DNA of 64,000 nt from Pavona decussata (taxonomy: Eukaryota), in contig CDRNST010000233.1 of the NCBI GenBank assembly GCA_977016875.1, positions 1,178,001 to 1,242,000 on the forward strand, in the 5' to 3' direction. Position numbers and translations under genes: made by a program. Under the pieces are notes generated by a model, which did not search any database, was not told where the DNA came from, and saw only the letters and a program-made list of their open reading frames with translations. Shown one piece after another: positions 42,347 through 63,943 of the stretch (its first letter is position 1; each line of letters opens with the position of its first letter).

Positions 42347-45300
42347 GTGAGGTTCCTTGATACTTACGATGATAGACGAGTAGAATCTCTGGCTATCCAC
42401 CCAGAGTTTATTATTACACGATCAAGTTATGTAGACACCCTGCCAAGCGTTCAGCAGCGTGGCTTTCTATTAAATCTTGTCTTTTTGTTGCGTCCTTTTA
42501 GGATTCGTCCACAGAGCGCCGCCGAGCGAATTGACATGTGTAGAGTTTGTACTTATGTTACCCCAGGTCATCCTCAAGTCGTCCTCGGAAAAGACAAGGC
42601 ATTTACGTTCGATCATGTTTTCGATAAGGAGAGCAAACAGTTTGCAATCTATGAACAGTGTCTTAGAGGACTTGTCGAAGGGTGAGCTAATAACCAAATA
42701 TTCCTTTTACGACTTTTAAATTTTTTCATCTCTGCTGTGTTATTCTCCCACTGCGATGTTGTACTTTTCAAACGCCGACAAGTCATTTTTCAAGACGAGT
42801 GCCAAATTTTAATTTTATAAGAATATTTTGAGGTAACAAGTACTTTCTCCTTATTGCAGATGCCTAGACGGCTACAATGCGACGGTTTTGGCTTATGGAC
42901 AGGTAAAATATTACTCATTTGTTGGGCGCTTAAAGATTTTCATAGTCCGCAGTAAAATGCAGTTTGAGCTTACAAGGCTATAATCAACATGGTTTCCGGT
43001 TGTAACTTTTTAGGTTCATGGCTTTAAATAGCCGTCACTTTGTACAAAAATTTTCCACGGTTCACTTGGCGTATTTTGTGATGTTAAATCGAGATCTCGA
43101 GTGTTCTTGTTAGATATAAGCAAGTCTCAAGCACTGACAACATCCGAGACAGTATGTTCCATAAGTTAGTGTACAGGAACTTAACACGCAATCTGCCTGT
43201 ATTTATTTTTCATGATGCAAGATTATTATTGTACATTCTTGACGTCTGAGTCTTTTATCTACGACTTATCACAAAAAGGATTTTGGTTTTGTGTAATGCA
43301 GTAATCGAAGTGTAATATAGATTGTATTGTGTTCATTTTGTGCATCTATTTCTCTCTAGGACCCCAAAGAGTTTTAATATATTTTTTCTGCTCTCTGCTA
43401 TTGCCGAGAAATAAATAATTGCGGCTATGGTTATGATAATTCATCGGTGAACTGGAAATTTGTAATTACAAAAGCTAGTATATTAATGCAAACCACAAGA
43501 ATTCTGCATCAAGATAACTGATCTCAATATGTTCTAGTGTATTGTGTATTTCTGAAATCGATAATTTAAAAAAAAAAATCGTTGAATTACTTCTTCGTGA
43601 GACTTTTTTTGGCTTTGTTTTTTTTTTTTTGACAAAATGTATTTTATTGTTCTCTTTGTTATAGTTTTGGAAAGCAAATAAATTGGCTTTTTCTGACTGC
43701 CATTACCCTGAATACATTTGTAGTTGCCTTGTGGTAAGATTTCTGGCACTGCATAAGATTACAGTGTCTAGATATCTCGTTGTGTGATCAAGTGAATAAT
43801 TGGCATCAGTGAATTTAAAATTTTGCTTCAAAATAAGGAATATAGGGAAACTACTCTGCAGGAGATTATATTATTGAACACATGCATATCATTAAACTTG
43901 TGTTCAAAAACTAATCTACACTATCAATGACCAAGACAGGTCATAAACCTACACAATGGCTCATTTTAATACTTTCTACTGCCACAATTAATTGATTTTA
44001 TTATTTTTTAAAGTACTTTTTCAGCTTCAATATTACAAATTTCTTTTTTAGCTGACTACTTTACTGTGCATCAATTTTTTTGTTGATTGTTTATATAGCT
44101 ATTTTTAGTTGAAACTAGGAATAATCTACAGCATCAATATTATTTCCCTTTGAATAAATTATGCAACATTGAGCAAAAACAGAAAGAGACAGCAACTGAA
44201 AAATCTTTCAACCCAAAAATCAAGGTTGTTTTAGGATGAATATTATAACTTTAAAGCAATAACGGATAACCCTGTGTAAATAAAATGTAAATTGGCAAAA
44301 TATATTCCCAAGTTTGAAACTGAATTTCAGTGTAATTAATGGAAATTGGTTTAGGGCAGAAATGATCAAAATTAGGCTTTGCAAACAAAATAACAACATT
44401 TAAGTAGACCTGGCAAACTGCAAATAAACTAACAGTAATTGTGTTGTCCCATTCATTGATGGGGTATGACATGTTCCTTGTCACATTTGTGATGCTGTTC
44501 TTTCCCTTTGATGTGCATTTTTTGCTATAACTTTAAATGATGTTGTGCCCCAGGAAATAAAAAGCTATTGAAATTACCAATAATATATTTATTGTGAGTG
44601 CCCTATTAATGCAATTTCAAGTAACCTATGAATAAATTAGCGATGCTTTTAGGGTAATAATTTAAGGAACTTTAATATGTCTTTTCACAATCAACAGTTA
44701 TTATTATTTTTTTTGGAAGTGTTCACCCCAAAATTTTACACTTGACCATTTGTGTACAAGATACGTTTTGTTAGTTTGGCTCCATGGTACATTTGACAAT
44801 AATGTTATTTTAAATTATATGCTGTAATCAGGGTTGCCACTGTCAGGGCAAAGTCAGAGAAAACAGTTTTTTTTTCAAGCTCAGGAAAAAGAAATGGAAT
44901 TCTGTATCAAGTCCAGGAAAAACTAAATTCTGCCTCAAAGACAGTGAAGAGTCGGGGAATTTTATTTTAGGGTAGGGACTTGGTTTGGAAAGGGGTTTCC
45001 TTGTTGACAAGGTTTGGTCGTTTCAAAAGGCAGTTACATGTACAAAGAAATTGATTTCTGTGATGTCATCACTGGTTTATTGGGAAATAATTTGTTTCCT
45101 GTGGTTATCAGTCAAAACTGGTTTTTGGTCAGTGAAAGTCACTGGCAACCCTAGTATTATTTCTAACCATTTTTTTGTGTGCTGCTGAATGTTGTAAAGT
45201 AAGCATGGTCCATGTGTTTTACAACTGAATCAACAAGACCGATTTAGATGGTGTGGTTTTGTTCTATGCGACATACTGACAACAAGCCGATGAAACAAAT

Positions 45301-48300
45301 TGTTTGGTGTAAATTAAACCTATGTCATGTCGTACAGGACACATAAAGTGTTGTAGGAGTTGGAACATGTTTTAAAATGCTATCACAGTTATAGTGTAGG
45401 CAGTGTTAAATGATGAGTTGTGTGATTATGATTTTTGGATGATGTCAGCAGTGTGTGCACTACAGTCTAAGTTATAACAACATTTGTTTGCTGCTTAAAT
45501 CCTTTGTTTAAACACGAAAAGATCCAGCCATGTTGCTTGGATTGTACAAAGCTTATAATGCACACCTGCCAGCTGACATCGGGCTTAATCTAATGAACAT
45601 GCATGCATCCATTGGCCTACCGTGGGTGTAAATTTAACAACACATATTGTAACAAAGTTGCTCATGACAATAATTGTAAGCAAAAATAGATTTTTCTGAA
45701 TCAGCATTGATAATGAAGTTTTTAACTGTTTTCTTCATTTTGTAATCTTACAGACAGGGTCAGGTAAGACCTATACCATGGGGACTGGCTTTGATATTGC
45801 TACATCTCCAGAAGAAGAGGGAATTATTCCACGAGCTGTTGCACATCTATTTGAGGGAATTGACAAGAGGAAACATGAGGCCAAACAAAGAAATGAACCT
45901 TCACCTGATTTTAAAGTCACAGTGCAGTTTATGGAGGTAAGGATGATTTTCCATGGCTGTTTTTATAATTTCTGGAAAAGTTCTGGCAGGAATATTTAAG
46001 CCTTCAGTTGTTTATCCAAATTTCCTTCATTGAGACCTGGTAAGGTTGTAAATGTTGTGGTTCAAAATTTCAAACCTGTTTGATTTTTAGTTCCCTTTGT
46101 CTCAGATTATGGTAATGAATACTCTACAAGGGAAAATAAAAATTAAACTGGTTTGAAAAATTTTAAACCAAAAAAAAAAAAAATAAATGAATATTAAATA
46201 AATTAAACCACAACATAAACATGCAAGTAGCTTTAATTCTACACTTAATAGTCAATTACATTAAAAAAATATATTATATTCAACTACAAAAGGTAATTAT
46301 GAATATTTATTTCTCCATCTTTAACTATACCCCATCTCCAAGAACAAACAAACAAACAAAACAACAACTGTCAGAATTTCACTACCTTATATAATATTAA
46401 AAGCATGAATCGATTAAACCTGGCCCTACTCCAAAATTTTATAAATGTTCATCACTTTTTAACCTGAGTTACATTGTAGTCACGGCACAGCGAAGACTCA
46501 AAATCCATCCTTAGCAGCTAATAACCCCTCTTTTGTATGCATTCAGCCATCAAATTTGTTTCTATTGTTATTTTTGCAGCTCTACAATGAAGAACTAATG
46601 GATTTGTTTGATTTCGACAATAACAGGGTATGACTTGCAATTAAGTTATCAGACTGTTAAACTTATCTTGTGGCGTGGAGGTATTTAGACTAGTTGATGT
46701 GTAAATATAGAACGGACACAAAAGGCAGATTTACATGTCATGGGAAAAAATGGTGTGTTGTGAAATAAGAATGTAGGTAAAGAGAAACAGGGTAAAATTA
46801 ATGCCAGATCTTTTTTGTAACACATTTTTGCCAAGTCTTTGTCCCTGCATGAGTTTGCATTACTAAACCCAGTGATGTGTGCTTTATTGCTTGTGAACTG
46901 AATAATTGTATGTTATTGTTACAGAATAATTGAAGAGTTTTGGGCAAGAATGGCATAAATGACTTTTCGCCTTAAAATCGAAATTGCTTCGAATATGTCC
47001 TGTTTTGGTACAGACAGGTTGTCATATAAGAAACTAAGTTGTGTATTTAAGTTTTGAGTAAATGCTACATAAAAAGAAACACTGTAGCTTGTTATGTTTC
47101 TAGAAAGTGCAAGCAACCTTATACACAAAAGAGGTACTGACGCTTGACTGATTTCATTTGTATACGAGACTGAACCAAGTTGCAGCAAAGCACGTGAACA
47201 AAAGAAGGCAGTCAAATCGTCTGCATCTCTTTTGTGTGGGCCTCTTGTATTTTCTACAAATTTAAAGTAATAAGCTAATTCTTTGACTTGCTTATTTAGC
47301 ATTTAAATCAAAAATTAAATATGCAAGTAATTATTAAGTTTCTCACACAACCGGGCTCTGTGCCAAAATGGGGCTTATTTGGATCAATTTCAATTTTAAG
47401 GCAAAATACACACTTACCCAGGCTCTGTTGCCCTAAAGCCTTCTTTCAATAATTCTTTATTAGTTTTCCTGTCTTTCCCTTGATTATCTAGTCTATATTT
47501 TAATAGTCAGTGTTGGTGAGTTTAGATAGAAAAAATACTGGTATTATTTAAAATTAATAATGTTTTGTTGTTTTGTAGGGTCATAAAAGCAATGTCAAAA
47601 TTCATGAAGATGCAAATGGTAACATCTACACCATGGGTGTAACCATGAAGCCAGTGAACTCAGCGCAAGATGTAAGCATTCAGCTTTCAGAATTGTTTAG
47701 AAATCTTTTCACTGAGATCATTCATTTAAATACCCATATTTTATTATATATGAATAAATGATTGTATTTATCAGGTTAAGGTCATTTCTCGCTACTTCTG
47801 CCTTGATTAATCTCTTATTGAATAGACAGATGTTTTCTTTTTTCACAACAGTGACTAATTCTTAAATTTCCTTTGTTTTACTATTTAACTTTTAGTTAGA
47901 TGTTAGTACTGGTTTTGACAGCTATGTTTTTAAAATAAACATTTTTATCAATATGATGTCAATAATATTTATTTGTATGCTTCCCTTCGCCCAGACTTTA
48001 AATTGTTTGCAACAAGGAGCTCTATCTCGAACTACTGCCAGTACAAACATGAATGCGCAGTCATCAAGATCCCATGCTATATTTGCTATTCACGTCAAGC
48101 AGCAGAGGGTTGTGAAGGTACATTAGCTTCAGCCTATTGGTTTTTAGTCATTTCTTCCTCTAAGGAGAGTTGATAACTAAAGGTAATTTGGCCACCGTAA
48201 AGATATTCAAGTGCTGACATTCTTAGCATTAGCCCTTTGTCGAATTGCCAATTTACCTTTAGTTATTAAACCAAACATTTGTTTCTACTCTCAACCAATG

Positions 48301-51300
48301 CAGCACCACAGTTTCTTTTAGAAAATAACCTTGTTATCTCTTCTCTAAGACTGATATAATCGAGACCAACCTCTACTGTCCAGATTCGAAGGGTGTCTGC
48401 CTCAGGAGAGTCATAATAGTATTGCAAGACTGCTGGGATGTTTTTTTTTTTTGGTAGTTTCACTGTTTGGGTGGAATTTAATATCAAGTTTTGAGTTTGA
48501 ACCAGTGTCACTACTGTGAAATAGTTGCAACCTTAAGTTAATCTCAATGCAAAATGTAAACTGTTAACAGAACAGTAAGTCACCCCTATCCCTTCCAGTG
48601 CCTATAAATCCACGGCCTAACAAGGCCATTTAAAGCAGTAAAAACAATGCAGAAACAATGAGTAGATGTAAATCCTTTTTTGTTCTAAATTATTAAGATC
48701 TATTTCTAGATTTATTTTTTGCATGTACATGTAAATTATACATATAAATTGTATGGGCAAACTGTGTCACTTATAAGAGCCTAGCTGGATTGCTGTCATC
48801 CTCACTTGGACTGCCTGTTGTTTTCAATAATTATGTAGCCTTTTTTGGCAAGTAGCCTTACCTCCTTTTACCCTCTGGCATCCATCTGAGGACCACTCTC
48901 TCCCCTGAGTGGCACTGATGGTTATTATATTGTAATTTATTATTTTTTTGGTTTATGTAGGTTGGTGGTGACGAGGACAAGCCTTCATCAGACAACATCA
49001 ACAGTTATGAATATGAGATGCTTTCAGCCAAGTTCAACTTTGTGGATCTTGCTGGCTCTGAGAGACTTAAACGAACGGGTGCTACAGGAGACAGAGCAAA
49101 GGAAGGCATTTCAATCAACTGTGGTTTGGTAAAAAAAGTTTTCTTCATGAAATTAACTGGGAGGGAATTTGCCATTGAAAATGCTGTAGGACATTGGGCA
49201 GTGGTGTCAAGTTGTTGCCCTTTGTCTTCTTCATCTTCTCTCACAAAATTAGATGGTGGTGTCCGAGAACCTGCATCACTGTTGAGAAAGGGTAGGGGAT
49301 GTAATCTCCTGTGTTGCGGTCTGGTCTTTCATCCTTGGGTGGTGTGAAGGGGCGGGGGTGGGTGATTAGAGGGCTCCATTGTGTGGACACCTTGCATGCG
49401 ACCCCGGAGTCCCATATTCCAATTTGTCCTGTTTGAGAGATATTCCCTGCTGAGAAATACAGAGATCTCCATTGCAGCTGCTTGTACATAACTAGGCTCT
49501 GCCCCTATAGTGCATTAAGAGTTTTTACAGGCTGTATGTTACATGTTTTTAGTGTACAAACTGGTTAACTGAATACAGATGTCTTTTCTACAGTTGGCCC
49601 TTGGTAATGTTATCAGTGCTTTAGGAGACTTGACAAAGAAGGGTAGCCATGTGCCTTATAGAGATTCCAAACTCACAAGATTATTACAGGACTCTCTTGG
49701 AGGCAACAGGTACAGAGCCCTAGCTACATGTAGCTAGCCTGTAATTCATAGCTGTGTTGTGTGTTCTGCCTTTTTTCAATACACACCTTGATTTACAATT
49801 CTTCACCAACACCTCAACCTCAACACCTTTTAAAAGTGTTCTTCATACATTTTGTCTCTTCACATTATCTGTTTGTGTATCAAAATTACATTTCTAACTT
49901 GTTCATTCAATATCTACCCTAATCCTGTAATTCTTGCTTGGGCATTATTTTGGTTTGTTAGATTGTAAATATGCATCAGGAAAATGAATGTACATCAAGG
50001 GAATGTAAAGGGGTTACTTGCCATGGCACAAAATTTGTGTACTTCCAGAAAATGTCCTTATCCCTCCCTCATCACAGAAGGGGTTAGAAATTCCAAAGGG
50101 TGGGGGAGGGGGGTCTTCAATAGCCAAAAAATGCCACACAGAAAACATTGCTCTAATGTTTTATCCATTGCTTTGTGCTTCGTTTTGTGATAAAAACGGA
50201 AATCTTGCCCATAATGATAGCTTTTTATATTTGTACAAGAAGCGCAAAACAGCAAATAAAACATTAGAGTGACATTTGCTGAGGGAATTCAAGGCCACAT
50301 GCAAATTTAAACTCCAGTTAACTTGAATGAAAACAACAAAATGCTATTTGAAATGCACTTATGTCAGTTATGCTCTCAGCACTTCAAATGTTCTTGTAGC
50401 CATGGCAGATAAAATGGTTGCAACTTGGAGGGTTAGATCAGGTTAGCAGAAATAATTTGAAATCAAAATAATTTGAAATCATCCGATTTTTGTGTTAGTT
50501 AAAAAATGCAACATAAATGCATTAATTTTATTTTCCTCCCTTTAGCCGAACCTTGATGATAGCTTGTGTGTCACCCTCCGATAGAGACTTCATGGAAACG
50601 CTAAACACGTTGAAGTACGCCAACCGAGCCAGAAATATCAAGAACAAGGTAAATGTACATGGGATGTAGTAAGTGTTCATGCATGTATTTTGGGGGCTGC
50701 AGTTTCTCTTAACCCACAGTTTTGTACAAAAATATTGTAATTTTCATTTTTGTCAAGTTCCTTCCTGAAGTAGACCAGGAAGAAGTATGGAATTATTTTT
50801 AACCATTTTTCCATCTCTGGTCTGTCAAATTTACCGCTGATGAGGATGGATGTAAAAAAGGAATACACTCCCGAAATAGGGAGGGGGGAGGGGAAGAGGG
50901 CTAGTAGGCATGGGTTTCTACCTTGTTTGACATATAATAATTTTGGGTAAGGCAGAGAATTTGAAAATTAAAATGAAAGCTAAATGCCCTGCCTCCCTTT
51001 CCCAGCTTTATTGTGATAGGTAGGGTTGCAATGTCGCCCCTACATACCTGTACACCAGTTTCTACTGATGCTGATGATTACTTTAGTCTCCTTAGGGAGG
51101 GGAGGGAGAGGAATAGCTAAAATGTTGGATTATTGACTGTTTATATTGTGCAATTCTTCAGGTGGTTGTGAATCAAGATAAAACCAGCAAACAGATAGCT
51201 TCATTAAGACTTGAGATTCAAAAGCTCACAATGGAACTGACGGAATTTAAACAGGTCTGTACATCATCCCAACCCCTTGTCCTACATGTACATGTGTAGA

Positions 51301-54300
51301 TAGTCACAGTGGGTGGTCAACAGGCCAAATAAGGGTCTTGCTGGACTGGGTTAAGTATGTTGGGTGATACAGTAGACATGAAGGCCTGTCTAGAACCCTA
51401 AAAGTGAGCTAATCACCCATTTAATGGATGATGGCAATTATAGAAGCTTTACAAGAAAACCTTGAAAAGGGATTTTTGAAAGACTTATGGCCCTACTTGA
51501 GATGAAATGGACTTAGAGATAGAGAGAGAGTCCACCAGAGATAGTACAGGAACTAAAAATATTAATAAGAATCTGTCAATGGCTCTAGCGTAAATTTTGT
51601 GAGATGCACACAACAACTTATACAAACACAGCTTACAGAGTAATTTCTAGAAATAGACTGAAACAATTAATTAACTTCATTGTTATCATTTTTGCTGACA
51701 CTGGAGCCAGCTTTAGCAACATACTGATTCTTTGACCTTCAATATTCAGTTAATTTGTAGATCCTACTTTACAAGCATACGCTCCAGGAGTTAATGTTTT
51801 GTATCTTAGTCTGCAAATCCACATTATTTATTGTTTTTATTTTGACTGTCAGGGAAAGAGAATGTCTGGAGTTGAGGATGGTCAAATTAGTGATGTTTGT
51901 CATGAGAATGTTATGCTGAAAACTGAAAATGACAAGTAAGAATACAAATAACATATAATGATTATTGTTATTGCAACATATTCTCTGAAACAGGCATTAT
52001 TTTGAGTTTGTGAAAATCTTGACATACCAATAATTGTCCTTACCAGTAAAGCCAACCCTCTTACATGTACATTAGGTGTGAAAAAAATAAAATGTTATAG
52101 CTGAAACTATAAGTAAAGGTGATGTTTTTGTTGAATATATTTCTGGTAGTAATATGGCAAGTTTATATGAAATCATGGGTTTTATAGGGGCTAATGAACA
52201 AATTTAAGTGAAGAGTTAATAGCTTATAATTGAAGGTCTGAGAGCATAACCGACTTATGTCGAATTTTAGCGCAGCTTTCGATTTCGCACGGATTTGTAC
52301 AAATTTTGGCTCTCCCTGCTTTGGAAAACATTTCGCGGTTTTACAATCGTGGACAAAACTCCTTGAGAAAACCAAACACGAACAGAACAAAAACCACTTG
52401 CTTACTTCTCCCTCCCACCCCCTCCCCCTATGCAATGAGAAGCGAACACAGACAGCCAAAAAACCACTCACTTACTGTTTCTCCCTTCATAATTCTACCA
52501 CAGTTACTTCTCCCTCCCCCCCTCCCCCTTATGCAATGTTGATGTGGGAAGTGATGCTTGCCAGGAAACTGTTCGTGACCCAAAAGACAACATTGAGTCA
52601 GGAGGAGGGGGAGGGGGATTTGGTAGTTTGCTTGTCTACAAGTGAACACGCTTGGAAGGCAAATTTTTTTGTAGGTTTTGTCCACGGCAGACTCGTTTTC
52701 CAAATTATCGGTAGGCTAAAAGTTTACACTGTCCACGAGCCGTGTTTAGCCTCACCAGTTGTTGTTTCTATAAGTAACGTTTGAGATGATATCATGGTTT
52801 GCTTTTGCGGGTTGTAACAAGCCCAAAATAGATCAAGGCAGTCGGGATAAACAACTTGCGTATCGTACTGGCTAGTAGGTTTCGCTTTTGTTTGGTGAAG
52901 TTTGTAAACGCACGACATCTATGGATCTTTTGAAAAGTTATGAAATTGACGAATGCAGTTCACAGGAACTGGTGGAAATGTTGTTCAAAGAATCCCTCCT
53001 TGGTAGTGATGACTGTGCCGTGGCGAATTTTTCAATTCGATTATCAAATCCCGCGGGAGCATCAGAGACAAATCCCGCCATGTGCAAGGTGTTTTGCAAG
53101 CCTTAGTTGTGGTTTGCCAGGCTTGAAATTCGGTATGTAACGATTAACTTGACAATTTCAAGGCAATGATTCAATAAAAGTACGATTAACATAGATTTTC
53201 AACGGTTAACACCGACTGCTCTTAAAAATAATAGATAGTCTTTACCTTTTAATAGAACTGCCGTTAATCGTTGTTAATCGTTGAAATGACTACATACCTT
53301 CCTGTTAATCGTGTAGAATGCTAGTATTTTGCGTTATCAAGAGTGATATGCTGACAAACGGGACAAAGCTGGATTTTACGCCAGGAAATGGACACATTTT
53401 CTCTTGGAGAATGTAACTGTTTACATTTCGGACATTCCTGTCACGTACGCATTAGTTTGTAACAGAATCAAATAAAAGCGTGACAGCATTCTTTTCGTTG
53501 CTCCCGCGGAAAACACCGCTTTCGAGTGCCGTGTTTCAAAGACAACAAGTGTATATTGAATACAAGTATTTAATCCTCAGTGCATTGTCCTTTTAATCAT
53601 CCAGTGTCTATAATGTTACCGATATATCTTTACAAGATGGTAAAATTTCTCAATGGCATTAATACGAAACACAAAGCGGCGTGAAAAAAATACTGGACAA
53701 TGGTTTTCAATCGAATTGCAGTTCACATGCAACAGTTTGGACAAATCCGAGCTACATCGAAAAACGGGCTGAAGTTCGACATAAGTCGGTTATGCTCCCA
53801 GCCCTTCAATTTGGCAACCATAAAGTCTATGTTTAATTTTCCAGGCTTCGTGTGCGTATCAAGGCTTTACAGCAAACAATCGACACACAGTCGGCCAGAA
53901 TAACAGATCTAATCTCTTCACAAGTGTTGGCATCAGTGGATGGTATGGGTAGAGTAAATCATACTAAAAATGCTGAGTGCAGGCTGTTTAGAAAAGTTTA
54001 GAAATTCACTATGTTTAAGTGTCAATTGAAAGTACAGTACTTACAATACGATACTGAACATTACGATACAATGCAATGCAATATGCTGCAGTGTAGTGCT
54101 GTGGTGTGCAGTGCAGTGCAATTTATTATTCCATCCAGGCAAATGAATTTTTTGGAACTAATTTACAATCAAATATTGCATGTAGAAACAAGCTTATTAT
54201 TAATAATAAAGATAAAAAAAGTCATATTCCAAGGAACAAAACAAAGCATTACAGACCTGTTATTTCCTTCGAAATTTTCATCACGCACTGTCTCCCCACA

Positions 54301-57300
54301 ATATTATTGTCACTCTAAAGAAGTTTTGTAGAAACTGCAACAAATTTACTTGTTTGTACACCATGTTCTGCAAAATCTTTCCACACAGGCAAGCTTGAGA
54401 TACATACAGATTTCCAAGAATTAAGACAAATTGGTACTCACATGTAGTATATATACAGATTTAGTATTTTTTCATGTACAGATTTAGTTTTTTTGTGTTG
54501 AACTCTTCTGGCAATCAGCTATTATTTCAAGGTTGTATCTCCTACATGTTTAGGTACATTCATGTACGTACATGTGTGCAATGTTGTTTTGTTTAACTTA
54601 GTAACTTACCCAGTTCATGTGCTCTCATTTTAAGGGGATGTTGATGGTGGAGTGGAGGAGCTTATTCAAAAGTACCTCAAGGAAATCGAAGAGTTGAGGT
54701 AAAATTAGTGCATGTCTAAAAATTATTGGGATTTATTGAGTATTGCATTTATAACCAATTTTCAATAAATACTAGCTTTTATTAACTGTAAGGCTGTATT
54801 GAGCAGGGATGTTGCTATTAGAGCCAGCTAACAGCAGATTTCACCATCTGAAAGGGATCTTATCACTGGCACAAATTTTAACACTCGAGAACACAAATAT
54901 TTTAGTCTAGTTTTAAAGGAGCACAGTCCAAAAGAGCTGGCTAGGTTTATAAATGAGCCTGCTGAGATTTTTCTAAGCTATATCCCTGATTGAGCCTATA
55001 AATCCATTAAGCCCCATCTTTTTTTTGTCATAGTCAGATAACCTATCAAGCTTCCCCCTTCCTTCATTCATCATGGTCATTGTCATCATTTGTATATAAC
55101 CTAATGCCTACAAGCTAATAGTTTGTTCATAATGCACATGCGTGAAATAAATTTCTCTCTTAAGTGGTTTGCCTTACTTGGTGCATGGGCAGAATGAGAT
55201 AATGATTAAAGCAATAAAAAAATGCAAAAGGCAATAAAAAATGTAAATTACAAAAGTGTAGAGAGCTTGTAAGAATAGTCCATTTTATACTGGTGGACCT
55301 AGTGACCTGGCCTTTGAGTGAAAGCAAGGAAGTAGTTGTCTCAGTGCTTTTGAAATGTAAATGCAAACTAGTTAGCATGAGAACAACATCTCAAAAGCAG
55401 TGAGGTTTGCATCATAACATAGTTAACTCCTGCCTTGATTCTACTCAAAGGCCAAGTCAATAAATGCACAACTGTAAAATGGGCAATACCAATCTCAAGG
55501 ACCTTTCTAAAATCTTTAGAAACAAGCTAACAGAGAGTGAAGCAATGGCAATGGCCATTACCCGTCATGCAGCACTCAAGTCTCGTATGGCATCAGCACC
55601 TGCTCCTGAATCCACAGCCTCAGTCCTGGAGATGGCAAAACAGGATGTAGCTAAACAGCGACAAAAAGCACAGGTGGTATTACGTAATCCTTCTCTCTCA
55701 AAAGTCAAATGTGTTAAGCCAATTAAGCCTCGGGGAGGCAGTCTCCATTCAACTATGAATGGGGTGAAACCTTCTAACATTCCAGTTAATTCATCTCGAC
55801 CTCAGAGTAAGTCTTTTCTTCAAACAAATGGTGGCCGGCTTAAGCTAGTGACGCCTCGGCTTCCTTGGAACGCTGGCAAGGTTCAATCTAAAACTGACTC
55901 TGGGCTTTATAACAGGACAGTACAGCGAGCAAGTCTTGTTATTTCCAAGGACCCCTGTCCTAAACCTCGGAGACCTAGTAATTATATAATACCAGCTGAC
56001 CGAGACAAACCTCTGAACAACTCAACATCAAACATTCCTAGTGATGTAGTGATGCGCAGATCTAAACAAAAATCTGCTAATTCTGAGGTAATAACAGAAA
56101 AGCGAAGATCTCGCAGTTTGGAATCTCTAATGAACAGCAGCTCTGCAATGGATACCTACCCTACTCCAACACAATGCTTCAAATGTAGGAAAGACATGAG
56201 TCGTGTCCTAGACTCGAGTGCGTCTGATAGGTTTTCTGATGCCAATAGCTCAACAAGTGACATCAATTGCTCCTTACCAGAGCTTCCGTTTGACCAGAAC
56301 AACAACGTAGTCGTTCAGGTCACTAACCATAAGTTCTCAGTGCCAAGAGCAGAGGTGCTTAAAGCAGAAAAGTTAATTCATCATCCACCGCCAGTGGATA
56401 TAGTATCTGACACGGAGTGTTATCAATACCACTTTGAAAGCGACAGCCAGGCGGAAAGTGATTATGGCACAGCTGTTGCCTCTGACAGCGAAGTCTACAG
56501 ATACAGGTCTAAAATAAAAGACAAGAGGAACCTTCATTTAGATTCCCCTAATCCTCATCTTTTACGGGAACACAGAGCTGAATCAGCTGGCAACATAAGA
56601 GAACGTAAGATTCAAATTGAACAAGACCTAGACTCACTCCTTGATTCCATGGCTTTTGCGTTAGGCAACTACCAGTCAAACACCAAAAGTGATCCTGATA
56701 ATGTTGGTGGTTCTGAAGATTCCCTGTACACGCCACCAGCCTTTTTCAGGCCAATATTTGAGGTTAAGATTTGAATGATTGCTCTAACCATTTTAAGCCT
56801 AAAGTTTAACAGAAATGATTTCTGACTTTTTTTATCACTATCACTTCTGAGCACTCAGTGGTACATGGTGCAAATTGTTCATATACATTTATAAGGGATC
56901 ATATGTATGGACAATTTCCCAAAGCTAATGCATGACTGCTTTTGTCACCACCTTTCTTCTTCATGATGTATTGATTAGTTATCCAGAAATATATGATTTT
57001 GATAACTCTTGGGTATTAAAGGATAAAAGGTAACTAAAGATAATATAAATTTACAATTAGGATCTTGATAATTAGAGTATGAATACCTGGATGTGTAAAT
57101 CATAAATGTGATAAGATGGATTGTTTGACTTTCTGTGATAGGAAATCTTGTTTGAATCTAAGAACAATGACAATTGACAGACGAGTGTAATTTTTACATG
57201 CATACAGAATGCAGAGAATGAAATTGTTGTAATTAAGGAGGCAGTTGATGCACTTTTATTTGGATAGTTAACCTTATTTAAGTGTGAAACAGTAAAATAA

Positions 57301-60300
57301 AATAAAAATTAGATTTAATTGTAAATAGTCAAGACTAAAGCTATAGATAAAAATTACAAAATTTCCATTGAATATGGAGAAGATAATATGAGATTGTGCT
57401 TAAGATAAGTACTTGAAATTTGAATTATGCTGCAATTTGTTGGCAGTTTCAGTTGAAGGTACTCCCTGGTGGAGGCCTTAGTAATATTTAACATTGAAAA
57501 GGCTTGTTTGATGGTGAATGATATTTTTTGCACCATTTGATGAGGAATTAAATTATTACTCCTGTACTGGGGGTTAAATCTTCAGTTGGTTAAAAAATTT
57601 AATGCCTTGCGATGGACATTATTGAGAGATTTACATTTTTATTTTTATTGTGAATACATTTGTACTCTGTACAGTGTACTTTGAATGTTTTTGAATGTTA
57701 GATTACAAATTAGAAATATTTAATCATCATTTAAACATTAAATGAAGAGAATTTCAAATGCTTTTAGCGATTTGGGAAGTTATTTAACAACTACAGTAAA
57801 ATATTTATTATTTATGCTTTTGTCCAAGACGTTGAATCAGATGCCTAATTGCCTGTTAAACTGAGACTATATAAATCTACAACATTCAGATCAGACCTCT
57901 TTAACGACAAAAACTTTAGAACTAGCATGTTCTAATACAGAGGATTTCCATTGCCAGATTAAATATTGTGAAGTTCTCTTCAGTGAAAAAATGTAAAACT
58001 TAAATTAACTTCTTGATCTGTTTCTTTACATGCTGTCCACTGTACATCAAAAACTTAAATCATAGTTAACTTCTTACCTGCATAAAGACTCCGTGAACTT
58101 TTAACAGTCTGTGACTCTCAAGATCTTTTTTACAAAAATAAAAGGAGATTGAAACTTGTTCCATCCGTTGTTGGATTTCTTCAGTTCTGTGTAGAGTCAG
58201 ATTCTTCAGTGTCTGCTGGTTCAGTTTGCTTTTTGGCTTTGTTCAGTTTCTTTGTTGCTCTTCTCACACTTTGTTATTTTATGCTTTGCTGCTTACACTG
58301 CTTGCCGTACGTTTGGTTCATTTCATTTCACTTCCTTGCATTTTTGTTGATTTTGTTTTCACTCTCTTGATTTCATTTACTTCCTTTATTCGTTTATTTT
58401 GTTGTTTTATCTTTTATGACATGTTTGTGTGACAATAAATTAGGATTTTATTTTGCTTGTCAACTTAAATAGCAGTTCCTGTCTTCTCTTTCCCCTAAAC
58501 CTCTCCCTCTCTCCTCATTAATTGTTGATGTTCCCACCCAGGGCAATTTTCTTGCACCATGTGACTATTTAATTGTGAAATAATCAGAGGATGTTTAACT
58601 GTACCTTTCAAAAACATGTGAGCTCTGAACTTTATCGCACAGCTAATGCTTGAATATTTTTCATGCCAGTAACTGCAATTACATTAAAAAGCCAGCAGAC
58701 CTTCAAAAAGAAAGCAGTTTAAATTCCACCAATCACAGGTTATGGTTGTAACCTATTGAAACTCTAAACTTCTTTCAGTGTTTTCTGATACTCTGATGAT
58801 TGCTGGCAGTGAAAAATGTGACGGTTGGTTGAGACTTGAGATTCAGTGTTTGGAAGTTAGCTAAAGGCACAGTTAGATGTTTATTTAATCCCATGTAGAA
58901 CTCTGTTTTTCTTCCCTTTAGACAACTGTAAACTCTACCTCCCCCTTTGGAAACTTGCTCAGAGTTTAAAATTAATATGAATCATGACACATTAATCGGT
59001 GCTGTCATTAATGTTTTGGCCACATGTTGCATTAAGCTTCTCACCCATAACAGTCTTGTTGCTTTATGAGTAAAATGACCCTAAAACTGTCAAGATCATC
59101 CATAACATCAAGGTTCTTTCAAGGATATTCAGTCGTAACAGGTGTTACAGGTTATGATCCTTAATGGCAGCTCTGAATTTCATCCCACAGCACAGTTGAA
59201 GGGCTCAGTAAGAAAAGCATAATTTGGCCTGAAAATCAAATTAACCCCTCAAATAACAAGCCCTATTTAGGCATAGATCAAGAGAGGGTGCATGTTCTGT
59301 AAGAGATGTAGTTGTATATGAGAGTTGAATGAATGGTGGAGAAGTGCCAAAAATGTGAAGAATTTCCAGACATTTTTGGCTTTTGGGCTTCCTCAGTGGA
59401 AGGGCTAAGCCGAAAACATCTGGACTTTCACTGAGGAAGGGTGAAGCCCAAAACATCTGGCATTTTTTCAAACATTTGGCACTTCTCCACCATTTACTCT
59501 ACTTTTATAGCTTTTGTATGAGTACCACGCAGCTGATGTTTTCATTTAACCTTTTATGCTTGTGTATGAATGTTAGTTTTGGACCTGGAGGCTGATTACT
59601 TTTTGTCTAAACTTGAAGCATGAATGGGGGGAGGGGGGTGGGGGGAGGGTCTGGATGGAATGATGGTTTTTGTGTCTACGGCTTCTAGAGAAGCGTAGAC
59701 ACTATGTCATCGGGTTGAGTGAAAGAGTGAAAGAGTGAAAGAGTGTAAGAGTGTAAGAGTGTAAATGCCACAGGAATCCCAAATGGAATCCTATCGAAAG
59801 CCGACGCTAATCCTCGACTGACCGAGATCTAAGCGATTGTTTTTCCGGATCAGGACAATGGCGACAATACGGTAAATGATGTTTTCCGATGTTGGTTTGC
59901 TTTTTACAAATAGTTTAAGTGATGATTTGAGCCAGAATTCTGTAACTTCTGTAATTTTCATCGCAAACGTGCCCGAATTTACTGCAAGAGATCGCTTTGA
60001 ACAAACACAGAGTGTCTTCAAATTTTACATGCGTGTTTGCACGCACGCAAAAAAAACTGAAAGTTTTCTGCCTCTAATAGCAAATGCATTGTTTATCTCA
60101 ATAAAACGTTTTGTTGAAAAAGCTTCTTGTTGATTTTTGTGGCTTTGTCAATTCATATATGCGTAAATGCTGCAAATGCGTAATCGAGGACAATTTGCAT
60201 AAGCGGGTTGAAATTTGATATGCCAAAGGTCTTCATCAACATGCCGTGAATTGTGGCAATTTTTGCGTTCAACTGTGTTTTTCGGCAAATGATTAATAGG

Positions 60301-63300
60301 TCACCATATTATTTTACACCAGAAAACATTTGTTTAATCATTCTAGTTTAATATGCAGTTAATTTTGGAAGCCAACGACATTTGTTTATCTACTACTTTT
60401 TATTTATGCGAAAACTATGGAAACACGACAGGAGTCAAAGGGTTAAAAAATGATACTTGCCATTCATAAGTTCAGTATAGATTAATTAACAGTTTCTGTT
60501 GCATTTTATGCCTACGTTTCAGATTACAACTTTGCTTTCAGTGCTCAGTTATGTTTAGAACTTTGCTGCATTGCTTTCAGTACAAAGTTGTGGTTCACGT
60601 TGTAAGATTATATAATATATTGTTTATGTTAGAATAAAGTTACAGTTCTCTTCATACAAAATATTTGTGGTAAACGATACCAGCTTAATCTCCACTCACC
60701 AGTATTCTGTGCAACATTTTTACAACCATTTTTTTTATCTCTATCCTATTTCCACTCCTCCCTCTTCGTTTTCATTTCAGTCTTATTTCCCTTTTCTTCA
60801 ATTCTTTTATATCACATTTCTATACCAGTACTGCAGTAGACACATGCAGTCTGAGACTGCCTATTTTTTAAAAATCTCTTGGATTCAAAATGTGTCGCTC
60901 CAGAAAATATCCATATGCCATATGGAAGGTTGGAAATTCTGAAGAGGGAAGGGGTGTATTAAATGGGTCAATTTTTTTTTAAGGAATATGTGAAGCTTAG
61001 AACTTTCAGAGGGAGGGTGGTCCACATCAAAACACCATCTCTGGGAGGGGTAGGGTATAGATATTTTCAGGAAGAACACAATTTAAGACTGCCGTCTGAC
61101 ATAAGCTCAGATTGGTATGTTTAAAAATTTTGCTCAATTGGATTAAAAGACAGAAATGATAGGCTAGCTTCTAAAAACAGCTTTAAACGTGGGGGAGGTG
61201 GATCTAAGCTATCTCATTTTGTTAGTACCCAGTCCACCTTTGCTTCTGGAGTGGGGACACATTAGACATTATTACACAGAGTAACTAGAGATCTCTAACT
61301 AGATGCTGGGGATGATGTCCATGACTTAGCTCGGATAAAACCAATGGCTAGAAGATTGTCCAATAAAATAACACTTGCTCAAGAAGGGATGGTTTGATTT
61401 AAACTGTGACGTTTGTATAACTAAGGGTATTATTCACTACTTACCAGCAAGCCACAAAGAGGTGTGGTTTTGGGTACCAGTCACACGATTCTGTCACAAA
61501 TATTTAATGAGATGTCATTAAAAACAAAAAACAAAACAAAACAAAATGTAATTAAGAATCAATGGATTTATAACGTGCTATCATTAACTTGGAAATAGTA
61601 CAGTACAAAGAACATCACCAGGGGATGGTTGGATTTGTTACATCTTCAGATAAGAAAGTTTACTATGTGAGGTGACCTTAAAAATGTAGGATTTCACCTT
61701 TGCACAATTTACTTGGCATTCAGTGGTCAAGTGAACTGGTCATTTGTTATTTCCTTTTCTTTCATACTGTGTACAAAATGATAATCTTTGTCTTCCTGTC
61801 TGTCGAACATTCTGTTTTGTCTTACGTCATGGTCTTTTGTACATCACTGCATCTCATGCATACGCTGTTCATTTGTCTAGTGCTCAGTCTGTTCTGGTGC
61901 TTTACTGTGAGTTGTACATCATTATTCCAAGATTGTTCCTTGTCCATTCAGTTTCCAATTACCTCCTCAAACTCAAACAGTCTTGTAATATTAACAATAA
62001 CAAATTAACCTTTATGATGCTTCAATTTACCACTTCACATACCATGGATTGCAAAAGAGGTGTTGCACAGCTGAGCTTCTCTTCTTTCACTGTCTTATCT
62101 TCGACGCAGTTTCTTCTTGGTAAGGCAAACTTGCAATTATTACAGCATGCCTGACTTCTACTGATAATCTAGATCTTTTTAAAAATTACGTTAATAAACC
62201 ATTTAATGTTGTTAAAATAAATGTTATTTATTTTTAAATTACTAGTAAAATGTGACCTGCAGACCACTGTATAATGATTATATCATTGTGTGAAAATGTG
62301 GTTGTCTTGTTGATTGATTGGACAGGTTCTTTGTCATTGTTAAAGGCATTTCTAAGAGTTAACTTATAAATAAATATTTCATTATAAAAGAAAATCAAAT
62401 TCATTACTGGCTACATTTTGAAATAAAATTTAAATGAAGTGAAATTATAATAATAAATCAAAATATTATTGAGGAGCTGTATTCTTTCTTTAAAGATTAT
62501 AGGTAGTACAAGATGATGACAAAAACAGCTTGTTAGTAGTAAAATCAGTGCATTTGCATCATTGCAATTTCAGTACATACATACATTGCTGAAAAACTGC
62601 AAACTACCTTCACTGATTTGATTTTCAGTTTAATCTAAGATTGTTATGTTGCTGGGAGACTTCATGTTATCTGATAAAATGTTTCTCCTTCAAGTAAAAT
62701 TGAGCTTTTAGACTTGGTGTCTACCTTCAGGGTAAAACAATTAAAGTAAAAAGTCTTTTTCTTAAATATCATTTAATATTCAAATTTATCAATATGATCT
62801 TAATCATGGTTCTATTGTTAAGTTAATATTTTATTTTAATGAAATTTGCATTGTAAATTATATTTGGCAGACAGACGTTTTGCTTCAACCATTTTAACCT
62901 GGTGATGGATGCTTAGTGCTTTAAGATTTTACTGTTAGAAAAACGTTTTTTTCAAATAACACGATTTCTCCAGTTTGTTTATATTTATCTTGTGTTTATC
63001 TGTGTGCACTTGTCAGCTGTTGTAGTTGCCAAGACGTTTGGAAAATCACTGCAGTAAAAAATATTAAACTGTTGAAAAGGTTACGATAGCCCAAATTTAA
63101 TTTGTCACATAGTTTCATTTGCATCAAATTCAATTCAAGGAAGTGGTAGCAATCCAATTTGGCATAATTTGTACTCAAGCCAAAGTCGCGTGTAACACCT
63201 GTCATTTTTTTGTGGTTATTGTAAGGATGATTAGCTGCCATATTGCAACAAACAATCAAGGCAAAGCAAAAATTCAAAACAACCTAGGATTGAACATGCG

Positions 63301-63943
63301 GTGGTTAAGCTTGTGTCCTGTTTATTGTGTATTTATAGCATATGTTTCCTGTCACTTTGTAACATTATGGTCTTTTGCTGTTGTTTATCAGAAGTTAAAC
63401 CGTCATGATGAAGAAGCGAAGGATCAACCCTGGGGTGAACAAAGCAGTGATGAAAGCAGCACTGAAGAAGATGAGGTATGAACCATTTGTGTTGTACATT
63501 AAACCTTATTAAATGTGGAAGCACCGAAAATCAAAGCAAGGGAAGACAACAGAAAAATTCATTCAGCAGAACACTGAGGAACAAAAGTATTGCTCAGTTA
63601 TCAACTGATTAAATATCATGTTTTATCAATAAAGGGGTAAATATGTCAACTATTTTAGTGATACTTGAAAAGGGTACAAGACATATTGTAATCAAAGGAA
63701 ATTGAAAAACAATTGATTTTGTATGTGAGTGAAAACTAAATTGAATTTTGAACTCGATCGTTCTAGTGGAAGAATGGGCTGTGAGATAGACAGTGAGTGG
63801 ATTTTATGTGACCAAGCTGTGATTTTATTTTGATCATTTCTCATTTGTTGTCCAGGAAAATGAAGAAGGTACCGAAGAGCAAGGAGATGAGGATGAGGAG
63901 GATGATGATGATGATAACTCAGATGATGATGAAATAGCTCAAG
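42312..63943 (+). CDS. KIF21: Kinesin-4 family KIF21A/B-like gene, 5' partial (motor domain, first coiled coil, acidic linker); continues beyond window
   Basis: Exons: 42312-42346, 42502-42681, 42860-42902, 45754-45936, 46580-46627, 47579-47671, 47995-48117, 48961-49128, 49594-49709, 50546-50648, 51162-51254, 51853-51935, 53845-53942, 54635-54698, 55520-55673, 63392-63475, 63856-63943. Motifs: [32 protein letters not shown] (KIF21-like), [64 protein letters not shown]. Confidence 0.92.
42502..42681 (+). CDS. KIF21: KIF21 exon 2
   Basis: [41 protein letters not shown]...LVEG. Confidence 0.92.
42860..42902 (+). CDS. KIF21: KIF21 exon 3
   Basis: [14 protein letters not shown]. Confidence 0.92.
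45754..45936 (+). CDS. KIF21: KIF21 exon 4 (P-loop)
   Basis: [14 protein letters not shown]...GIIPRAV...VQFME. Confidence 0.92.
46580..46627 (+). CDS. KIF21: KIF21 exon 5
   Basis: [16 protein letters not shown]. Confidence 0.9.
47579..47671 (+). CDS. KIF21: KIF21 exon 6
   Basis: [31 protein letters not shown]. Confidence 0.9.
47995..48117 (+). CDS. KIF21: KIF21 exon 7 (switch I)
   Basis: [41 protein letters not shown]. Confidence 0.92.
48961..49128 (+). CDS. KIF21: KIF21 exon 8 (switch II)
   Basis: [36 protein letters not shown]. Confidence 0.92.
49594..49709 (+). CDS. KIF21: KIF21 exon 9
   Basis: [12 protein letters not shown]...[20 protein letters not shown]. Confidence 0.92.
50546..50648 (+). 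CDS. KIF21: KIF21 exon 10 (end of motor)
   Basis: [34 protein letters not shown]. Confidence 0.92.
51162..51254 (+). CDS. KIF21: KIF21 exon 11 (neck coil)
   Basis: [31 protein letters not shown]. Confidence 0.9.
51853..51935 (+). CDS. KIF21: KIF21 exon 12
   Basis: [27 protein letters not shown]. Confidence 0.88.
52232..53807. mobile_element. Non-autonomous DNA transposon (1576 bp), ~40-bp TIRs, AATT target-site duplication (Sola-like)
   Basis: Left AATT|GAAGGTCTGAGAGCATAACCGACTTATGTCGAA; right TTCGACATAAGTCGGTTATGCTCCCAGCCCTTC|AATT. No long ORF. In KIF21 intron 12. Confidence 0.8.
53845..53942 (+). CDS. KIF21: KIF21 exon 13
   Basis: [32 protein letters not shown]. Confidence 0.88.
54635..54698 (+). 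CDS. KIF21: KIF21 exon 14
   Basis: [20 protein letters not shown](R). Confidence 0.88.
55520..56774 (+). CDS. KIF21: KIF21 exon 15: internal donor at 55673 (canonical isoform) or read-through to TGA at 56774 (alternative terminal exon, 366-aa new tail)
   Basis: NKLTESEAM...[17 protein letters not shown]|GTGGTA donor is in phase with exon 63392. The frame stays open 1.1 kb further to ...FEVKI*; AATAAA at ~57296-57306. Confidence 0.75.
59674..60446. mobile_element. Probable non-autonomous element: terminal hairpin plus (GAGTG[AT]AA)n microsatellite
   Basis: GTCTACG-GCTTCT-AG-AGAAGC-GTAGAC hairpin at ~59674-59700, six 8-bp units at ~59717-59765, CpG-richer body. Right boundary uncertain. Confidence 0.4.
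63392..63475 (+). CDS. KIF21: KIF21 exon 16 (acidic linker)
   Basis: [28 protein letters not shown]; CAG acceptor, GTATGA donor. Confidence 0.8.
63856..63943 (+). CDS. KIF21: KIF21 exon 17 (poly-acidic)
   Basis: [29 protein letters not shown]; GTAAGT donor; like the acidic stretch of vertebrate KIF21A. Confidence 0.82.

Follow-up and report, generated by a model that had tools for sequence, protein, structure and literature searches.

A probable composite terminal exon encoding a conserved tail in the KIF21 gene of Pavona decussata and other cnidarians

The 64,000-nucleotide stretch of Pavona decussata DNA analysed here (contig CDRNST010000233.1 of assembly GCA_977016875.1, positions 1,178,001 to 1,242,000 of the forward strand), hereafter called the window, contains the motor half of a KIF21 kinesin gene. 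Within this gene the reading frame of one exon continues past a weak splice donor for 366 codons into the intron. Sequence comparison suggests that in the KIF21 gene of cnidarians these codons, at 55674-56771, probably form the coding portion of a composite terminal exon of ancient origin. As expected of a composite exon, they continue the exon at 55520-55673 in frame, end at a stop codon of fixed position and are under selection. The tail that they encode is conserved and previously undescribed, and it would belong to a KIF21 isoform that arises through RNA processing of a known kind.

Conservation of the open frame past the donor

The open reading frame (ORF) at 55464-56774 comprises 436 codons, and no longer open frame is present on the forward strand of the window. 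Its opening part is the end of an intron, and after the acceptor tttag/A (a slash marks a splice junction) the exon starts at 55520. This exon matches residues 455-506 of protein P0040 and is kept in all homologues. The tail ends in FRPIFEVKI followed by TGA. Given the local stop-codon frequency of 0.062, the probability of 366 stop-free codons is ~8e-11, and the GC content is 0.41 across the ORF vs. 0.29 in the following kilobase. The first-pass annotation, a reading of the window made from the letters alone, had described a long frame past CAG/GTGGTA whose product is basic and then acidic; the coordinates, length and end of the frame were all borne out, as was the charge pattern. The first 150 residues of the tail contain 30 Lys and Arg vs. 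8 Asp and Glu and have an isoelectric point (pI) of 11.3, while the remainder is acidic with a pI of 4.9-5.5. The second longest stop-free run on the forward strand, 180 codons at 52242-52784, lies in an upstream KIF21 intron and shows no conservation in the relatives with which it was compared.

The genome has a single copy of the tail, and neither a paralogue nor a donor gene was found in it. A Pfam scan of the tail returned no family, a profile search against the PDB gave noise only (best E = 0.67), and direct comparison with the stalk of the long isoform revealed no resemblance. Leads from the ESM Atlas to the serine-rich microtubule-associated proteins CCSER2, MTUS2 and NCKAP5 were sub-threshold (<=0.85) and compositional, and they were not counted as evidence. 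The AlphaFold2 model computed with the alignment is disordered (mean predicted local distance difference test score, pLDDT, of 47), save for one helix at residues 295-331 (pLDDT ~80).

The possibility was considered that the frame is a chance or relic opening in a retained intron and has no protein function. The lack of a Pfam family and of a relative of solved structure, together with the mostly disordered prediction, would fit such a relic. However, this explanation is scarcely credible in view of the chance probability given above, and it is refuted by the selection analysis. The ratio of nonsynonymous to synonymous substitution rates (dN/dS) was 0.12-0.19 in six species pairs with dS between 0.26 and 1.4. 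In the two more divergent loci, L015 and L017, the introns can no longer be aligned, and the nucleotide similarity that is left lies in the KIF21 exons and in the block formed by exon and tail, where it ends 4-40 bases from the stop codon. The position of the stop is the same across species, although the codon itself may be TGA, TAA or TAG. The dN/dS values, the limits of similarity and the fixed stop with a varying codon show that the tail codes for protein and is subject to purifying selection.

When the tail by itself was used in a word search, 29 proteins that cover it from end to end were found, at 95-34% identity. All but one of them, an NCBI model from Acropora millepora, are simple ORF calls made on contigs of genomic or metagenomic origin. 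Conservation of the ORF in other corals and anemones had been proposed as a check, and the frame is indeed kept end to end in ~30 cnidarian sequences. The exon order, with the KIF21A_2nd exon followed by the exon with its tail and then by an acidic exon, is also found in the very divergent locus L012. Two of the homologues, P0033 and P0034 from Logan assemblies, have a tail ORF translated from C-to-T converted DNA, apparently from bisulfite runs. The changes are P to F/L, S to F/L, R to C/W, A to V and T to I, and they include CGN to TGN; the pattern would mean that the CpGs of the tail exon were read as unmethylated in those samples.

The age of the arrangement was estimated from distant relatives. 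When 1.84 billion representative proteins were searched exhaustively with a profile, 11 hits were obtained, two of which, P0035 and P0036, are very divergent; beyond cnidarian-type sequences this search found no relative of the tail. P0036 (506 residues, from a Tara coral metagenome) has a KIF21-like start, ILELAKQDL...KKAK/V, and ends in FYQPVFEAVI. The arrangement on its contig matches that in the window, a KIF21A_2nd exon lying upstream and the acidic exon following after 4.4 kb. P0035 (276 residues) comes from a 5'-truncated contig and ends in VFDLAI. The C-terminal 90 residues of the tail profile aligned with P0035 at E = 1e-12 and with P0036 at E = 5e-9 in hhalign. P0036 might come from a hydrozoan fire coral, a guess based on the sample type. 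The comparisons date the combination of exon and tail to the divergence of stony corals from sea anemones at the latest, and it is probably older.

Gene models, the donor and the 3' end

A protein with the architecture predicted for the short isoform is already deposited. GenBank entry KXJ16022.1 from Exaiptasia diaphana, named "Kinesin-like protein KIF21B", has 900 residues and consists of the motor, KIF21A_2nd and a tail ending in FRPIFEVKI, with the junction KQRAQ/VVMRKN. It surfaced in a search limited to long proteins, and it matches the earlier suggestion of a motor joined to this tail without a WD40 domain. A literature search on this and the other accessions, and on cnidarian KIF21, found nothing relevant.

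Several points weigh against a composite terminal exon. The KXJ16022.1 entry may be an ab initio model that halted at the first in-frame stop. In Acropora millepora, NCBI annotated a separate 258-residue "uncharacterized" protein, XP_044174813.1, and two models from Actinostola, KAK3701852.1 and KAK3701860.1, splice into and out of the ORF and go on into the KIF21 stalk. The polyadenylation site is a candidate, proposed from the sequence. No transcript-derived spliced ORF of either isoform was found in the protein collections by word or exhaustive profile searches; the word queries were the tail, residues 283-438 of P0039 and residues 430-620 of P0040, and the matches were genomic ORF calls and P0040 itself, with N-termini that were in all cases intron-derived or internal Met starts. 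Since the collections hold neither isoform as a transcript ORF, they are silent on expression. Finally, the functions proposed at the protein level are drawn from composition and analogy.

The Acropora model raises the question of whether the tail is a separate nested gene with its own promoter inside the KIF21 intron, for NCBI treated the 3' two thirds of the ORF as an independent protein. However, the start Met of XP_044174813.1 is not conserved and is a Leu in the window (LNNSTSN), and homologue alignments contain no conserved Met in either the tail or the upstream exon. The Met of the upstream exon is Ile in P0029 and in Actinostola. Conservation sets in with the KIF21 exon and extends in frame across the junction in all species, and KAQ/VV is invariant in all 27 proteins that reach the junction, with the frame continuous from the upstream exon. 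A nested gene is thus quite improbable.

On the reading given by the two Actinostola models, both of which pass into and out of the ORF on their way to the stalk, all or part of the tail would be an internal cassette that full-length KIF21 splices out by means of a donor within the ORF. However, their exit donor, GAA/GTGAGT, is species-specific, and the conserved ORF runs past it to FRPIFEVKI and the stop. Seven GT dinucleotides are conserved in seven species, and all seven are explained by invariant Val or Ser-Asp codons. None of the conserved GTs besides that at 55674 has a good donor context, and the donor-like CGTAAG at 56603 is not conserved. Moreover, the fixed stop and the strongest conservation at the very C-terminus argue for a true protein end. 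The cassette was rejected as very improbable on the grounds that the exit donor is species-specific and no internal donor is conserved. Because the full ORF is intact in the Actinostola genome, the exit donor is peculiar to that species and every conserved internal GT is accounted for by codon needs, the splice-through models are regarded as prediction artefacts. The two models, on contig JAUJYZ010001508.1 (L014), disagree with each other and with the conserved ORF. Taken together, annotations of corals and anemones treat the locus in three mutually inconsistent ways: as a truncated gene, as a separate gene and as a spliced-through model.

The composite exon would depend on the donor at 55673/55674. 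Its exon side is perfect, but in hexacorals it has none of the intronic bases +4A, +5G and +6T. The intron starts with GTGGTR in six hexacorallian loci and with GTGGTT in Actinostola, and the junction is AAG/GTGCGG in L012. Nearly all other donors of the gene that could be placed have at least one of the three bases, in what is an approximate comparison. The donor is dual-coded, the same bases encoding the invariant Val-Val-Leu-Arg. Both routes from 55673, splicing to 63392 and read-through, are in frame, and the spliced junction reads KAQ/KLNRHDEE.

The first-pass annotation had pointed to AATAAA at 57296-57306 as the polyadenylation signal. An overlapping pair is present there; as a conserved signal it did not hold up, since an 8-nt deletion removes it in the closest relative, L016. 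Hexamers of the type A[AT]TAAA occur at 3.5 per kb in the intron that hosts the tail, which is the chance density, and the presence of AATAAA by itself therefore carries no weight. A better candidate for the 3' end is a block conserved further downstream, together with the ATTAAA near 57.74 kb. This block is 82% identical to L015, where the flanking intron no longer aligns. It holds TGTACTCTGTACAGTGTAC, a triple UGUA at 57661-57679, whose pattern has no second occurrence on either strand of the 64-kb window. The triple UGUA lies 834-887 nt past the stop in three species and is followed 41-58 nt further by a hexamer of the polyadenylation signal type, ATTAAA at 57737-57742 in the window. UGUA elements promote cleavage in mammals, and the block may well be used in 3'-end formation here. 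The short form is inferred to be expressed in P. decussata and to arise by intronic polyadenylation. A literature search on KIF21 and intronic polyadenylation found nothing relevant.

Two other parts of the same intron were recorded. The stretch at 58103-58401 can be aligned to L015 (69% over 312 nt) while the neighbouring intron cannot. A conserved block at 62010-62125, common to L015, L016 and L017, opens with ATGATGCTTCAATT, includes CAGCTGAGCTTCTCTTCT and terminates at a strong donor, TTG/GTAAGG (62119/62120), of phase 1 and out of frame with the exon at 63392. Its short ORF, M(M)LQF...LSFSS...LL, is uninterrupted in three of the four species, L016 being the one with a stop. The block could serve a transcript without the motor as an alternative first or 5' untranslated exon, or it could be a poison exon or a U1 decoy.

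Tail features and the proposed short isoform

Conservation of the tail is concentrated in short islands, among them the CxxC motif, two SD[ST]ExY repeats, LDSPxP and FRPIFEVKI. Three C-terminal islands, LDSPxP, the island next to it and the C-terminal end, are the ones that persist in P0035 and P0036, and for this reason they are taken to be the ancient core. The conserved core is made up of LDSPxP, one helix and an [IV]F[ED]xxI end. The KRRSRSLES segment is a candidate phosphosite of the basophilic-kinase or 14-3-3 type.

The tail had been proposed to act chiefly in plus-end tracking that depends on end-binding (EB) proteins, through two SxIP motifs in the manner of KIF18B and MCAK, with the terminal EVKI as a PDZ ligand. 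Two SNIP motifs were found where they had been reported, at 55773-55784 and 56028-56039, and the first is in a suitable context. It is surrounded by basic, acid-free sequence and resembles the MACF ligand KPSKIPTPQRK under published rules for EB ligands (PMC12695022). The second is doubtful, as it has an Asp at +2. Some support for an EB role comes from the basic halves of 31 homologues, in which [ST]x[IL]P occurs 30 times vs. 8 expected by shuffling, and from the canonical motifs that P0035 (RRSHIPV) and P0036 (RTLIPG, KSRIPV) carry of their own. However, the 30 occurrences represent ~4-5 independent, non-aligned sites, so that the enrichment is marginal (p ~0.05, a rough estimate), and the basic half is free of such motifs in 11 of the 31 homologues, those of Exaiptasia and of several stony corals among them, despite the strong conservation of the rest. 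Site 1 is present in many stony corals, is lost in P0006, P0012, P0013 and P0014 and is absent in anemones, while site 2 is limited to part of the stony corals. The motif is not retained among orthologues, its positions shifting between lineages.

The complex of site 1 with EB was also modelled. Two copies of the coral EB homology exon (L018:1471-1623) with a 34-residue site 1 segment scored 0.27 against a mark of 0.34, a result that speaks neither for nor against binding; the EB fragment also lacked the C-terminal tail, which is needed to lock the ligand (PMC12695022). EB binding in P. decussata is possible, if doubtful. The lineage-specific distribution of the motifs within an otherwise strongly conserved tail indicates that EB binding is not what kept the tail conserved, and the mechanism centred on EB is not supported as it was put forward; as the main role of the tail it is unlikely. 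The reading as a PDZ ligand is likewise weakened. The terminal V-K-I-COOH fits the class II pattern. However, conservation spans ten C-terminal residues, with an invariant Ile at 0 and an invariant Phe at -4, while position -2 varies among V, A, L and E in distant relatives.

A composite terminal exon suggests the following mechanism. When the weak donor is not spliced to 63392, cleavage and polyadenylation would take place inside the intron, the candidate site being at ~57.75 kb, past the conserved UGUA elements and ATTAAA. The product would be a kinesin-4 of ~870-900 residues, a length estimated by mapping the exons against P0040, with the motor, the neck coiled coil (KIF21A_2nd) and the mostly disordered tail. 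It would lack WD40 as well as the stalk segment, in which the autoinhibitory coiled coil and additional microtubule-binding sites, including a second microtubule-binding region, of KIF21A and KIF21B are located (PMC5383399). The earlier claim of a motor free of autoinhibition and WD40 thus stands as far as the absence of the domains is concerned, by position relative to that stalk region (PMC5383399), while its EB-dependent tracking is not supported as put forward. Because the truncation precedes the autoinhibitory region, the short isoform would be active without release of autoinhibition and should, by analogy with the engineered KIF21B fragment MD-CC1, be a dimeric, constitutively motile motor, to which the tail would add new contacts with the lattice, the tip or a partner. 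The basic Ser/Pro-rich half would most likely add microtubule affinity, with SxIP-EB binding possible in some lineages including Pavona. The acidic middle may be phosphorylated, and the C-terminal module (LDSPxP, one amphipathic helix and [IV]F[ED]xxI-COOH) may be a docking site for a partner or regulator.

More tentatively, cnidarian KIF21 may be an ancient two-output locus, possibly older than the split between anthozoans and hydrozoans, at which a dual-coded donor switches between an autoinhibited WD40 kinesin and an active short motor with a partner-recruiting tail module. KIF21 motors regulate how microtubules grow, both at the cell cortex and in neurons, and their control by autoinhibition underlies a human eye-movement disorder. 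If the proposal is correct, a natural and conserved isoform would show how an early animal lineage retuned KIF21, and the tail would be a conserved peptide module that could be used directly in the search for new partners of kinesins.

Host gene and comparison with known systems

The gene is a true KIF21, as had been proposed, and the ORF lies inside one of its introns, contiguous with an exon. The motor exons span 42.5-50.7 kb and the neck-coil exons 51.2-54.7 kb of the window. All motor exons align to P0040, the motor domain of which was recognized at E = 3e-94, and Pfam Kinesin (PF00225) matches exon by exon at 42.3, 45.8 and 49.0 kb. PF23204 (KIF21A_2nd) matches the exons at 53843-53947 (E = 6e-4) and 54640-54699 (E = 0.04), each below the per-exon cut-off. 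The stalk of P0039, the other protein used to map the exons, holds a long Asp/Gly-rich repeat (DDDGGNDGDGSGGI) that resembles a translated simple repeat.

The 60 kb of the same contig past the end of the window were also examined. Further stalk exons were found there at 64.5-71.7 kb, and PF25764 (KIF21A_4th) was recognized on downstream exons (L005) with E = 9e-26 and 3e-12. WD40 repeats follow in the same orientation ~9-12 kb past the window end (L005:9276, L006:356 and L006:1833; E = 5e-5 to 7e-4), each match being a single-exon piece below the 27-bit cut-off. Colinearity suggests that WD40 and the motor belong to one transcript. In L016, the closest relative, a DIRS-like retroelement with ORFs for RVT_1 and Phage_integrase domains occupies 4456-7145 of the KIF21 intron that precedes the exon; it is absent at the homologous place in the window.

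Table 1. Features of the KIF21 locus within the window; exon limits given as approximate are those of high-scoring segment pairs (HSPs)
Feature	Position	Strand	Remarks
Tail coding sequence	55674..56771	+	366 codons; read solely when the donor is unused
Shared constitutive KIF21 exon	55520..55673	+	51 codons + 1 base, ends AKQRQKAQ; common to both isoforms
Read-through donor	55671..55682	+	CAG/GTGGTATTA; also codes Q-V-V-L
Next long-isoform exon	63392..63475	+	acceptor ttatcag/AAG, phase 0; 3' end approximate; kept in L015 and L017
AATAAA overlapping pair	57296..57306	+	at 57296 and 57301; deleted in L016
Conserved 3' block	57619..57723 (57742 including ATTAAA)	+	candidate polyadenylation site
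SxIP site 1 (SNIP)	55773..55784	+	basic, acid-free, Ser/Pro-rich context
SxIP site 2 (STSNIPSD)	56028..56039	+	acidic Asp at +2; part of stony corals
Invariant LPWN	55860..55871	+	within LVTPRLPWN...SKTDSGL; alignment A1
KRRSRSLES	56100..56126	+	K143, R144, S146, S148 invariant; RRLSRSLDTLL in P0035
PTQCFKCRK, invariant CxxC	56166..56192	+	P165, Q167, C168, F169, C171, K173 invariant; VCCAKCRKEM in P0035
LDSPxP and sole predicted helix	56538..56666	+	AlphaFold2; kept in P0035 and P0036
C-terminal FRPIFEVKI + TGA	56745..56774	+	near-invariant in all homologues
Motor and neck coiled-coil exons	42497..54699	+	tblastn with P0039 and P0040; Pfam; exon-only conservation vs. L017
Motor/neck exons (approximate)	42497-42685, 42861-42905, 45751-45936, 47591-47671, 47980-48117, 48979-49131	+	HSP limits
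Motor/neck exons, continued (approximate)	49594-49729, 50544-50660, 51159-51254, 51835-51936, 53843-53947, 54640-54699	+	HSP limits

The Exaiptasia protein KXJ16022.1 has the same architecture as the proposed short product and an orthologous tail. It differs in coming from another order, the sea anemones, in being a gene model named by its best hit, with the missing WD40 half unremarked, and in having a basic half without SxIP. In vertebrates, KIF21A and KIF21B have orthologous motor, neck coil, stalk and WD40 in common with the long form of the window gene. We know of no WD40-less isoform of either that arises by intronic polyadenylation at the same position, and no matching isoform was found in the literature.

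The RNA-level switch resembles that of immunoglobulin mu, whose secreted and membrane forms are the classic case of competition between splicing and intronic polyadenylation. In both genes in-frame coding sequence comes after a weak donor, and a stop and polyadenylation signals then lie inside the intron. In contrast to it, the KIF21 switch is deduced from the conservation of the sequence, and the donor bases are dual-coded for Val-Val. At the protein level, KIF18B and MCAK (KIF2C) likewise join a motor to a basic Ser/Pro-rich disordered region with SxIP-type motifs. However, they belong to other kinesin families, and in KIF21 the motif is not conserved in orthologues and EB binding is a prediction.

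A functional parallel to the short form may be the engineered KIF21B construct MD-CC1 (van Riel et al. 2017, PMC5383399), which forms a motile dimer without autoinhibition, slows the growth of microtubules and detaches from plus ends. Like the short form, it consists of the motor and part of the first coiled coil and is devoid of the CC2/rCC autoinhibitory region and of WD40. Unlike the short form, MD-CC1 is artificial and has no added tail, and the 366 extra residues of the KIF21 short form could change its behaviour at the microtubule tip or towards cargo.

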